From Selaginella moellendorffii (taxonomy: Eukaryota > Plantae > Lycopodiophyta), in assembly GCF_000143415.4 (NCBI RefSeq), contig NW_003314278.1, positions 202,371 to 266,370 of the forward strand: a DNA stretch of 64,000 bases. The letters are read 5' to 3'. The notes beneath the pieces are model-generated. The model was given only the letters and a program-made list of their open reading frames with translations. It ran no database searches and was not told where the DNA came from. Of the stretch, positions 1,839 through 50,700 are shown in pieces; within the stretch, counting starts at the first letter, position 1, and each line of letters starts with the position of its first letter. Both the position numbers and the translations under genes were made by a program.

Positions 1839-4089
1839 ATGGGAGAGGCATTGCTCGACGCTGGGGGCGAATCGATGCTCCCGCCACAGGCGTTCCTGGA
1901 GCGGCTCAAGGATTTCGGGCAGGAGCACACGCTGGGGCGCTGGAAGGAGCTGAACGAGGTGGAGCGCGACGAGCTGATCTGCGAATTGGAGGTGGGAAAT
2001 GTGCCAATTTATGGCTTGATCTGGAGAAATCTCTGCTTGCAGGCGGTAGATCTTCCTCGCGTCTCGCGGATTGCGAGGAAGACACTACAGCGCGGTGAGA
2101 TTTCTAGCAGGGAATTTTTTCTTTCTTTCTGTGCGGTCTCGCTTTTGGTCCAAGCTTAAACGCTTTGTTTTGTCAGGAGATTCTCTGAGAAATCCAGTGC
2201 CGCTAGCAGAAGCGTCGGTGTCTTGTATTGAAGAAAGGACTGCCCAGGAAAGGGAAAGATGGTGGGGATTGGGCTTGAAGGCGATCTCCGAAGGAAAACT
2301 GGCGGTGCTGCTCTTGTCAGGAGGCCAGGTATCCTCAAATTCTTGTCTTGTTGCCTGGAAACCTTGGCCATTTTCTTGCAGGGCACACGCTTGGGTAGTA
2401 ATGATCCAAAGGGATGCATTAGTAAGTTATCGCTCGATTCCCTGGCTTTTTCTTACGAGTTTCCATTTCCACTTCGAACAGATATCGGTTTGCCTTCGGG
2501 AAAGTCACTGTTTCAGCTCCAGGCAGAGAGAATTTTGAGAATACAAAAACTAGCCTCGAATCGGGCTGGCTCAGGTATGCAAGAGTTCTTGAGAACTGTT
2601 CTAGTGGGCTAACCAAATCAAATACACAGGAAGGCTAGTCATGATCCCATGGTACATTATGACGAGTCCATTTACAGACACCGCTACTCGGCAATTCTTT
2701 GAAGCCAAAAAGTACTTTGGTCTTGAAGCACAACAGGTTTGATCCGACTTTCCTGTGCTAAAGGGAAGATGCTTACCTTGTATCATTTTCAGGTAATCTT
2801 CTTTCAACAAGGGACGCTTCCTTGCGTGACGAAGGAAGGGAAAATTATCATGGAATCTGCCTGTAAGGTGTTGATAAGCTGTTGAAAGCCTAAGTGTTTC
2901 ATCACATAGCTGGCATTGCAGATTTCAAGGGCCCCAGACGGAAATGGTGGAGTCTACGCAGGTACGCGTGATGACTTCTATCTTACTACTGAAGTTAATG
3001 GGTATACTTTTACAGCTTTGAAGTCCTCGGGCCATTTGGAAGATATGGCCAAGAGAGGCATTCATTACGTGGATTGTTTCAGTGTAGACAATGCTCTGGT
3101 ACGATTTCGTTTAAAAAAAATCAGTAAACTTCGTTAGATTCATAGACTTTCTTTACAGGTTCGGGTAGCAGATCCACTCTTTCTAGGCTACTGCATCGAT
3201 AGAAACGTCAGCTGTGCTGCCAAAGCTGTGAAGAAGGTATATATTTGATTTTTTTAATTTCCCCCTTTCTTCCAAAGTCACCTATGCGTGTTTTCATAGT
3301 TGTATCCTCAAGAAAGAGTTGGAGTCTTCGTGAGACGTGCAAAGAACGGACCTGTGGCCGTCTTGGAATACAGTGAGCTGGATCCTGCTCTCGCTTCCTC
3401 GGTCAACCAAGAGACAGGACGATTGAACTTTAAATGGAGCAATGTAAGACGTGCTTTTTTCTTTCGCATGCTTCCAACTCTTCTATTTTTTCAGATTTGT
3501 ATGCAAATGTACTCCTTAGAGTTTTTGGCTGCAGTGACGGATGAATTGGAGCAAGACAGCATGTAAGTAGCTCCTGGAACTTAAGTTTCTTCTTTTATGA
3601 TTGGATCTCACTCCTGACGTTGCAGATATCATGTTGCTGAGAAGACAATACCTTCCGCGGACGGGCCTGTCCAAGGCATCAAATTAGAGCAGTATATATT
3701 CGATGCGTTTCCATATGCTCCATCGGTGGCGATTTTCGAGGTATGCTGGATTGGTTGCTAGCTAGTTTTCAGTTTCTTGTTTTAGCAGGTTGTAAGAGAG
3801 GAAGAGTTTGCTCCGGTGAAGAATGTGAGTGGAGTGGACTCGCCAGAATCGGCTCGATTGTTACTTCTTCGCCTCCACATGCGCTGGGTGGTAGCAGCGG
3901 GAGGTTTCATTCTACACTCGGTGCCATTACATTTAACTGGTATGGATGGATTAACTGGTATTTAGTTTGTCTCTTGAACTTGAATATCCTGTAGGAGTGG
4001 AGGTCAGTCCTTTGATCTCGTATGCAGGCGAAAATCTCGAAGAGATATGTCATGGGCGGAGCTTTCATGTCCCTTGTGAAATACGCTAG
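1839..4089 (+). CDS. UAP1: UDP-N-acetylglucosamine pyrophosphorylase, multi-exon
   Basis: Motifs LLSGGQ|[26 protein letters not shown]|[18 protein letters not shown] and [10 protein letters not shown] across GT-AG introns. Confidence 0.93.
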
Positions 4090-4228
4090 AGGAAATTTTT
4101 TTTTTAAAAAAACGAAGGTCAGTTTCTTGTGGAGTGAATAATGCGTTCGTGGTATTCTGCGATGGGGGCAGAAATTTTGTCATCTAGAAACTCAACTTTG
4201 CAATAAAAAAAACTGTTGATATAGTTGG

Positions 4229-47640: not shown

Positions 47641-47760
47641 CTTGTACTCCATCTGAAAAAATCCAAGTAAAAGGTGGCAAAGGGTTCCATATCTTGTTTG
47701 GTTCCACATAAATTTTTCTTCTTGTCAATGCAAAACTTTGACAACAAAATACCAAAAGCT

Positions 47761-50700
47761 TTAACAGCTAATTTGAGGCCTGCTGCTCGTGCACCTCCTG
47801 GGAACTCCAATCTCGCATGCATTCACCTTGGCTGCAAACCGCAGCGAGCACAGCGACTCATGGAGTGATTTGGAGTCGGGGGAGATATTCACGAACATCA
47901 GCGTCTTCGAGTCGCCACCAAGGCAAGGCTGCGTTTTGATCACACAGTAAGCACTTGCACAAATGTATGCAAGAATTTACCTGGAGAAGATAAGTCAGCT
48001 TTGAGTTTCTATATGGGATGTGAGGGTCTTTGTTTGCAATCGCAAGGATCACGTCTCCGAGGCTAGACAAGCTCTTGTTTATGGCCTGCGCAGATTTGCT
48101 CTTGTTAGAGTGATACTCGCAAACTTGGATTAGCACCTGTGTTTCCTTCAGGCGTTCGCCGGTGGAGCCGCTTTTCGAGAGGCGCTCGCTTCCAGCCAAG
48201 TCGATCAGGTTGAGAACTCCCTGTACCTGTTGCTCAGTATTCTACACACACACAAAGAAAGAAATCATTCTTCGTATCAGTGAAAGCAATGACTACCTCA
48301 TTCGATCCTATGATCCGCAGCGTGAATACACAATGGCTTCGAGAGGACCTGTCGTTCATAGCTGTTTTCCCCACAGTCCTGCCAAAGATACAGTTCGGTC
48401 AGCCTGCTAACGAGAGATTGCCAAACCAAATTTCTTTTACCTGCTTTGTGCAGCTTGCCTCAAAAGGGATGACACCTCTTCCCAGCTGTTAACTTCCACG
48501 ACAGTAAGCTCGGTCACAACGGTATTCCCAGTTGGCTCGTGCTTTATTGCGTGCTGCTTTGCTGGGGTCGTGTCCCCACCCACGCTTTTTAACGGCGCAA
48601 GAAGATCTCTTATGGTTTCATTATAAATCTCAAGAAGTGAAGCCTGGAAAAAGAACGAATAAATCGCTCCACTACGGAAAGAAACAAACTTTGTGCTGAC
48701 CTGCATTTTGAAGCTCCATCCTTGCGAACGAAGTGCTTGGCTGCACTGAAAGATCTGCTCTAAGGACCTGGGAATCACACCCTTCTGGTCCATGTCATCT
48801 GGCTGTCCAATCATAGTGTGTGTCTTGCCCGATCCAGTTTGGCCATACGCAAATATGCAAACCTACAAGGACAAGGTAAACAGAGAATGCCAACAAAAGA
48901 AAAGGTGTTACCTTATAGCCATCCAAGGCGCTTTGAACGAGCTGTGAAATCTCAGTAAACACGTCTCTCTGAGAAACGTCGGGTCCAAAAGTTTTGTCAA
49001 AAGAAAACGAGTATGTTTGGCCTAAAGAAACAGATAAGCAGCTGCATGTATACAGATAAATTTACCTTGAGCCTGGTGTAGCTCAATTCCCTCCTCGCCT
49101 GGATAGCTGATCAGCGTCGATGATTCGTCGTTTTCATCGGGTAAAAGTGGTCTTACTCTACAGAATACACGAATGTTCCCCTTCAGCTCCTGTAACATCA
49201 CTGTTTGCCTTAGGTGATAAAAACAGAAAAGCGCGAACCTGGATGGTGTTATGAAGCTTGCGCCGCAACAACTCTCCCTCACGGAGCTGCTGCTCTGAGT
49301 CAGCAAGTTTGTTCTCAAGGGCTTCAATTTTTGACATATATTCACTGCTCCCAATCCTCTCGAAAGACAATGATTTTTCCGCGACCTGATCCATCAGCTT
49401 AAGTAGATAGAAGCAGCATACATTTTACCTCTAGCATCTCCTTCGACCTGTTGAGTTGTTTTTGAAGGAGTCTGATCTGCTCCGCTTGCTTGTCGTAGCT
49501 TTCCTGAACAAAGGGTTACTATGAAGTACGTAAAAGAACGTCTTAAATACCTCCAACGCTTCTGCCTTGCTCGTGAAGCGCATAATCTCAGCGGCAGATG
49601 TTGAAGTTTTTTCCCTGATTGCTGCATTTTCAGCTGACAATGCCTGAACCTGATGGTAATAGTTGTCCCTTTCTTCTGAAACACGAAGGAGCTCCGCCCG
49701 CAAAAGAGAAAGTTCGTCATTTATTGACTTCATCTTGGCCGTTTCAGCTTGCAAAGCATCCTGCAACAAGCACGTTGAACGCAAAATCTTTAACAATCTT
49801 AAGGGACCTACCTTTGCTGTTTCGAGTTGAGTTTGTAAACCAGCATAATTTCCACGCAACGCGCCTAAGGTTTCCACAATAGCTGCCTTCTCTTTCTGCG
49901 TCTTAGCGTTTTCTTCGGTAGCCAAAGCCGCGTCACTTTGTAGTTTACTGTTATAAAGCTGCAAACTCGTGTTATACTCCTGCAATCGCCTGTTCACGTC
50001 CTGCGCTGTTCCGAGCTGAAAGAACAGAGATTGCTATTTAGCAACAACCAAGGAGTAAGAAATATCTCTAACCTGATGATTACACTGGGCGACTTCTTTT
50101 TGAAGTTTGTCAATCTCTTCATTCAACTTCGTGCGTTCTTCTGAAGCTACTTCCAGCGCCTCCACATCCTTTGCGTGAGCCAGTGAAAGTTCCTGAGTTA
50201 TTGAACATGATGTTAGCCAGAAATCAGCGTGAATTGATTCCAACCTGCTTCTCGGCTTCTAGCTTCTGAAACTGTCCTACAAGTCTATCATATTGTTGCC
50301 GAGCCTCTACGAGTTTAGCCTCCAATTCACCATACTTAGCGGACATCTTTTGCTCTGTTAAAAAGAAAACATCTCAACTTGCTTGCTCTGGAACACAACA
50401 TAAGAGACTTACCTGATTCTTCGTGCCGTTGCTTCTCCTCCTTGATCTGATTCTGGGCCTGTTCCTGCTGCATTACATAGACACTCTCTACTTGTAAAAA
50501 CTGGCGAATGCACGTCCTTAGATTTTTTATGTACTCCATCATTTTCTCGTTCCTTCCCTGACGATCACACGGCAGAAAATAGGTGTGACACCACGAAAGC
50601 GAAGAAAAAAGAGAAGAAAAAAACGTACCTTGAGGTCGAACTTAGATTTCCCAGCCATTTTCGTATTAAGCAAAGCCTCCACTTCGTCACTGGCCATACG

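Follow-up and report, generated by a model that had tools for sequence, protein, structure and literature searches.

Deletion-driven decay of local gene duplications in two haplotypes of Selaginella moellendorffii

Duplicated blocks and neighbouring genes

The window analysed here is a stretch of 64,000 nucleotides of the lycophyte Selaginella moellendorffii (assembly GCF_000143415.4, contig NW_003314278.1, positions 202,371 to 266,370, forward strand), in which UAP1/UDPGP-family, PPR, PPR-DYW, MiAMP1-family, NUP133, cap methyltransferase (MTase), VPS35, kinase and kinesin genes lie among shortened copies of parts of themselves (Table 1). Self-BLAST of the window gave four clusters of local similarity, and gapped alignments of each parent with its copy recovered the four DNA-level duplications that a first-pass annotation, made from the letters alone, had placed there. 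Segments several kb long, their ends inside genes, were duplicated as DNA before the haplotypes diverged, and the copies shrink by many independent, ongoing deletions with few insertions.

Scaffold GL377571.1 of assembly GCA_000143415.2 is collinear with the window and ~95-98% identical to it, and was therefore taken as the second haplotype; its proteins pair with those of the window, and five of its loci, merged without conflict, yielded 59.7 kb matching window positions 1-53420. Because all four systems are also found in GL377571.1, the copies are not chimeras of one assembly path. Both haplotypes are products of one assembly project, yet an artefact is barely conceivable when the same copies, ~9% diverged from their parents, stand on two scaffolds that differ within them by 195 single-nucleotide polymorphisms (SNPs) and 53 indels and have 74 deletions in common. 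Assembly chimerism was rejected on these SNPs, indels and shared deletions.

The copies keep introns and genomic order, as unprocessed (duplicated) pseudogenes do. Most duplication breakpoints are intragenic, as had been claimed without exception; the PPR-DYW copy, for one, starts 52 bp upstream of the ATG. The copies account for 9.7 of the 18.9 kb that are non-genic in the part of the window from 4 to 48 kb, or 51%, about half and not the 'most' of the first description. No further local copies were found in the window at 50-64 kb among the matches listed. Three other regions (~31 kb collinear) held one comparable local copy, and the window may therefore exceed the average in duplications. 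On an unrelated scaffold (L011), 12839-13361 against 16723-17363 is a deletion-eroded local copy of an acyl-carrier-protein gene with several 9-bp deletions.

Table 1. Parent segments, copies and associated features of the window, by position
Feature	Position	Strand	Remarks
UAP1/UDPGP-family gene, parent segment	2579..3859	+	internal exons and introns
UAP1 copy, event 1, inverted, decayed	4229..4943	-	1281 to 715 bp, 20 deletions
PPR copy, event 1, inverted, decayed	4946..5595	-	parent part 6489-6954
Foreign insert in PPR copy	5087..5360	-	~275 bp, intron-containing, receptor-kinase-like by motifs, weak (E=1.8)
PPR gene, parent segment	6489..6954	+	gene 5736-7043
PPR-DYW 5' end copy, event 2, direct, decayed	16574..16812	+	parent part 20522-20867
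Class III peroxidase C-terminal fragment	16832..16951	+	E=0.009; no parent in window
NUP133 3' part copy, event 2, inverted, decayed	18183..19255	+	parent part 25862-27294
MiAMP1-family gene kept in event 2 inverted copy	19440..19763	-	intact
DYW 3' part copy, event 2, inverted, decayed	20106..20518	-	parent part 22538-23028; abuts intact PPR-DYW gene
PPR-DYW gene, parent	20574..23015	+	intact in both haplotypes
MiAMP, decayed	25294..25547	+	partner of 19440-19763, at inferred ancestral position
NUP133 5' parent segment	28474..30153	-	1680 bp
MTase remnant, event 3	31003..31100	-	98 bp; parent 32744-32920
VPS35 3' copy, event 3, decayed	31155..31597	-	parent 33515-34101
NUP133 5' copy, event 3, decayed	31596..32179	-	1680 to 584 bp, 94% identity, 14 deletions
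Kinase copy 1, event 4	37339..38755	+	447 aa intact in other haplotype; broken in window
Gene-like sequence, event 4 copy	38924..39973	-	partner 45202-46474; indels in both directions
Kinesin copy, event 4, decayed	40146..41458	-	parent 48194-49975; 29 deletions
Haplotype-specific inversion in kinesin copy	41459..41721	+	263 bp; joined without base loss or gain
Kinase copy 2	43752..45233	+	frame open in both haplotypes
Kinesin gene 3' part, parent segment	48194..50250	-

In events 3 and 4 a plain tandem duplication was followed by reciprocal gene loss: the remnants follow the duplicated gene order, and each gene is intact in at least one copy. On the minus strand event 3 reads VPS35, MTase, NUP133-5' remnant, VPS35-3' remnant, MTase remnant, MiAMP, NUP133, and the position of the MTase remnant (which scores 70, shuffled sequences at most 29) is the one that a tandem duplication predicts; a MiAMP remnant expected near 32180 was sought and not found. 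Event 4 is a direct duplication of a kinase, a gene-like sequence and the 3' part of a kinesin gene. Kinase copy 1 shows decay just starting, with deletions of 9, 8 (a frameshift) and 87 bp in the window haplotype. The kinase paralogs (37398-38637 and 43799-45136) differ by 32-33 mismatches within a haplotype against 42 between the alleles of copy 1, and the duplicated DNA that flanks them is ~8% diverged; gene conversion between the paralogs is likely. The gene-like pair had no Pfam or Atlas match, and both of its members look damaged. Between the two kinesin sequences, 46501-47193 is a 693-bp imperfect palindrome (region 46497-47641), around which the second haplotype (merged positions 51088-53925) is 1.4 kb longer, with an extra pair of inverted arms of ~720 bp; the region is possibly a foldback or Mutator-like element.

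Events 1 and 2 each combine a duplication junction with an inversion. In event 1 the inverted UAP1 and PPR copies are joined at ~4945, between their parents, in a tandem-duplication-type junction. Event 2 runs from a direct PPR-DYW 5' copy through inverted NUP133 3', intact MiAMP and inverted DYW 3' sequence to the intact PPR-DYW gene, and includes at 18183-18245 a short, oppositely oriented NUP133 piece (parent 27653-27722). Both blocks contain fragments of genes whose parents are absent from the window, at 5087-5360, where a Pfam search was without a match, and at 16832-16951, which a 101-bp deletion has truncated in the window haplotype.

The route to these two mosaics would be tandem duplication followed by inversion. 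One-step template switching, re-insertion of an excised circle or capture by transposons is a possible but less probable route, which would accommodate the permuted and inverted order of event 1 relative to its parents as well as the kinase-like and peroxidase fragments inside the copied blocks. Small inversions, however, segregate between the haplotypes here, the one in the kinesin copy and a second of ~190 bp near 23095-23283, two within 54 kb, so that the two-step route needs nothing unusual; events 3 and 4 are plain tandem. In the self-comparison of the window no flanking terminal repeats were seen around the copies, but termini could be eroded, and Helitron ends were not scanned. The alternative touches the copying step only and is compatible with the deletion result.

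The intact PPR-DYW gene, which faces MiAMP head to head, has only ~52 bp left of the DNA originally upstream of it (20522-20574); the former promoter side is with the dead 5' copy at 16574, so that expression may now depend on new sequence. The window carries two intact MiAMP1-family genes (19440-19763 and 30553-30900) and one decayed (25294-25547); the gene at 30553-30900 differs from its allele at 5 non-degenerate and 0 degenerate sites, which are small numbers. The (AT)n microsatellites at 23692-23769 and 24195-24254 lie within an AT-rich, highly polymorphic 2-kb intergenic block.

Neutral loss by deletion

Decay was counted in nine parent-copy alignments comprising 4566 matches and 452 mismatches. 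Across these the copies carry 116 deletions (2995 bp; median 10, mean 25.8 bp) and 31 insertions (395 bp, of which 275 bp are one foreign insert) beside the 452 substitutions. They retain 87-94% identity with their parents and have lost ~37% of their span; the abridgement cited in the first-pass annotation, NUP133 from ~1.65 to ~0.58 kb, agrees with the measured lengths. Simulation indicated that ~10% of deletions are merged or missed, and loss of whole genes lies outside the count.

Parents and copies have diverged by 0.070 at 0-fold sites and by 0.133 at 4-fold sites, a ratio of ~1:2, as expected if the copy is neutral and the parent constrained. Many of the deletions shift the frame, and such disabling lesions together with neutral divergence are what characterizes unprocessed pseudogenes. 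From the same two values the copy lineage has accumulated ~0.068 substitutions per site, which gives for the old copies ~0.33 deletions and ~6.9 bp lost per copy-lineage substitution and a half-life of unselected sequence of ~0.10 substitutions per site. Haplotype divergence at 4-fold sites is 0.036, and set against the divergence of the copies this puts the age of the duplications at roughly 3.5-4 times that of the split between the haplotypes.

That the copies are retained for a function, for example antisense or hairpin silencing of their parents, is very improbable. Two of them do form inverted repeats with parents at 0.4-2 kb, but their divergence is neutral in pattern, pieces of 10-58 bp continue to be lost from one haplotype or the other, and no Rfam match was obtained.

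The loss is still under way. When the 53 indels that distinguish the haplotypes within the copies were polarised by the parent, 37 proved to be deletions (667 bp in all) against 3 insertions (7 bp in all; p=2e-8), with 13 unresolved; this amounts to 0.19 deletions (interval 0.13-0.25) and 3.4 bp per SNP. The high ratio of deletions to substitutions that had been suggested for this locus is thus borne out, in the polymorphic as in the old events. The accompanying suggestion that erosion is tied to the duplicates failed: indels of at least 4 bp occur at 5.3 per kb in the copies (0.215 per SNP) and at 7.9 per kb in other intergenic DNA (0.150 per SNP), and erosion specific to the copies was rejected on this comparable rate. 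With similar indels outside them, the copies simply expose the background spectrum of the genome.

Sizes and junctions of the deletions

Among the haplotype indels of the window 22 are of 4-7 bp, 41 of 8-12 bp and none of 13-15 bp. An independent sample was drawn from three allelic pairs on unrelated scaffolds, the ~31 kb of collinear sequence already mentioned, with the 8-12 bp band set before the sequences were fetched; it replicated the hump (14, 32 and 2 indels in the same classes; p=2e-8). In the pooled data 73 events fall at 8-12 bp where a power law predicts 32 (p=3e-14) and a geometric distribution 40, and 2 fall at 13-15 bp where 12-14 are expected. Deletions fixed in both haplotypes have the same shape (9, 20 and 1). 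The spectrum is therefore not monotonic, whereas monotonic size distributions of indels are the usual case (PMC11385596, PMC2374710). A literature search, with many journals outside its coverage, found no study of the small-indel spectrum of Selaginella.

Two trivial causes of the hump were rejected. An aligner artefact does not account for it, since simulated power-law deletions were recovered without a hump at both divergence levels; nor does selection for reading frame, since the hump holds inside pseudogene copies and in lengths that are not multiples of three (13 events at 4, 5 and 7 bp, 34 at 8, 10 and 11 bp, 3 at 13, 14 and 16 bp). The trough at 13-15 bp is followed by a second cluster, of 16-21 bp (17 against 0 clean events; post hoc p=0.001). 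A longer periodicity of ~10 bp was not found past these two clusters (p=0.2-0.4), and the 8-12 bp deletions have no sequence motif, GC bias or hairpins.

The ends of the deletions are mostly unmatched. Random placement of the old deletions of at least 5 bp would give a mean microhomology of 0.70 bp, and 0.77 bp is observed (p=0.28); in the clean subset the two values are 0.71 and 0.95 bp (p=0.07); an aligner-aware null of ~0.53 bp makes a mild excess possible. Recent indels, those between haplotypes, have no microhomology in 31 of 68 cases in the window and in 12 of 33 in the three other regions, and at least 3 bp in 13 (4.6 expected, p=0.0003) and 6 (2.4 expected, p=0.025), respectively. Pooled, 43 of 101 clean recent indels of at least 5 bp show none, 70 show 0-1 bp, 31 show at least 2 bp (~18 by chance) and 19 at least 3 bp (~7 expected), an excess of ~12 events, so that ~12-15% of recent events appear homology-guided, some of them within low-complexity sequence.

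Microhomology-mediated end joining (MMEJ) had been put forward as a plausible source of the deletions from several junctions, three of them quoted, ttttcc[ccacagtcc]tgcc, acctgc[tttgtgc]ag and aaagt[..gtgt]atcg. These exist as written, although two allow an alternative alignment, and a microhomology excess is real among recent deletions; it characterizes a minority of them. As the main source, polymerase-theta-dependent MMEJ or illegitimate recombination between short direct repeats, as in the model of maize fractionation, is unlikely. It would explain the significant excess of recent junctions with at least 3 bp, the clear 5-7 bp cases at 5406 and 39251, shown by the parent to be deletions, and a mid-size class that resembles the 11-30 bp deletions of Arabidopsis with defective non-homologous end joining (NHEJ). 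It does not explain that 69% of junctions have 0-1 bp or that the excess in old deletions is at most mild; slippage may account for several of the high-microhomology cases, which are found in low-complexity sequence. In maize 10 of 16 gaps are flanked by direct repeats of at least 3 bp (PMC2893956), against 19 of 101 here (Fisher p=0.0006). Because the scars of maize and of Arabidopsis relying on alternative end joining show far more microhomology, MMEJ is regarded as a minority route.

Our preferred reading, to which we give a probability of about 0.65, is that four old, unselected local duplications record the general mutation spectrum of the genome and that the deletions are mostly scars of homology-independent end joining. 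Broken copies are neutral and their parents constrained, and shrinkage would be driven by double-strand breaks repaired mostly by classical NHEJ, with 12-15% of joins guided by microhomology. The scars have the character of classical NHEJ, mostly 0-1 bp of microhomology with blunt re-ligation products. The 263-bp inversion without base loss, the second small inversion near 23095-23283 and the foreign fragments in the blocks would fit joining of two breaks and patching of breaks. For the 8-12 bp class the most likely and most economical account would be staggered ends, produced by nicks about one helical turn apart, that are trimmed and ligated, longer overlaps staying annealed.

The 8-12 bp class could instead arise during replication or excision, by loss of a primer- or turn-sized single-strand patch or by abortive staggered transposase cuts with a target offset of 8-10 bp. 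This too is improbable, marginally more so than a dominant MMEJ. The sharp edge at 12 bp, with its trough and following cluster, the lack of motif, GC bias or hairpin, and a strain-specific, motif-free 9-bp class in Chlamydomonas (PMC4617969) all suit it; the absence of periodicity past the first two clusters does not, and blunt inversions and larger blunt deletions would still require the joining of breaks.

Several observations weigh against the end-joining reading that we prefer. Staggered ends predict tandem duplications of 8-12 bp, and none was seen, the tandem cases being one of 13 bp and one near-tandem of 20 bp. The end-joining step is deduced from the statistics of scars, erosion has made the duplication junctions illegible, and indels outside the copies are unpolarised. 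Against a flat distribution over 4-12 bp the hump is modest (p=0.01). Two Brassica assemblies taken as an angiosperm control hardly differed from each other, and a local paralog pair showed 24 unpolarised gaps to 111 mismatches, with 7 at 8-12 bp and partly in frame; this control is too small to be decisive and gives no ground for calling Selaginella exceptional.

On the most probable reading this is ordinary pseudogene decay by deletion-biased end joining, mostly blunt, with one reproducible anomaly, the size hump. Erosion of copies is a known process; the unexpected part is the 8-12 bp excess with mostly unmatched ends, which points to a specific break-repair route. A stronger proposal, which we offer tentatively and regard as doubtful, is an undescribed genome-wide pathway, motif-free and largely homology-independent, each event of which takes out 8-12 bp, about one helical turn of DNA; slippage aside, no indel class would be commoner, larger plant genomes would have little or none of it, and it would contribute materially to the ~100 Mb genome size despite frequent local duplication. 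Indel sizes are commonly taken to follow a power law or a geometric distribution; the departure from this is a sharp, testable signature, and if the hump proves common to other plants, the finding reduces to well-documented pseudogene decay.

Comparison with deletion in other genomes

With these copies small-scale DNA loss in a lycophyte can be estimated directly and from polarised events. Unselected DNA decays with a deletion bias in rice LTR (long terminal repeat) retrotransposons, where each substitution is accompanied by 0.095 deletions and a loss of 2.79 bp, and in dead-on-arrival elements of Drosophila, where the values are 0.114 deletions and 6.9 bp (PMC1940013). Set beside these, the Selaginella values, polymorphic and old, correspond to a loss rate two to three times that of rice and to a similar number of bases lost as in Drosophila, although methods differ and the ratio is approximate; the half-life compares with 0.25 substitutions per site in rice.

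In maize fractionation redundant copies are likewise removed by short deletions, with a mean of 25.9 bp that is close to ours (PMC2893956), after whole-genome duplication there and after local duplication in Selaginella. In Arabidopsis Ku70 and Lig4 mutants only 12% and 4% of junctions lack microhomology, the length of which has its peak at 3-4 bp (PMC7482170); the low microhomology in Selaginella matches the NHEJ-proficient pattern, whereas its deletions are longer than those of wild-type Arabidopsis, mostly 1 bp or <10 bp.

The closest precedent found for the hump is strain CC-2931 of Chlamydomonas reinhardtii, in whose mutation-accumulation lines 9-bp deletions make up 120 of 408 indels, without explanation (PMC4617969). 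The likeness lies in motif-free deletions of about one helical turn in the green lineage; in Chlamydomonas they are of a single length in one strain, and in Selaginella they form a band of 8-12 bp, fixed as well as polymorphic, in four genomic regions.

Passages of the Selaginella lepidophylla genome study (PMC5750206) put Selaginella genomes at ~90-180 Mb without whole-genome duplication, count 6693 tandem duplicates in S. moellendorffii, and explain small size by large LTR-rich deletions in a process of 'bloat and purge'. As described in those passages, haplotype-specific deletions, frequent local duplication and a genome of ~100 Mb are common to both species, the indels there being LTR-rich and of 5-85 kb, with nothing on the spectrum of small deletions. 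The copies in S. moellendorffii lose DNA by small deletions, which could plausibly help to explain small genome size.

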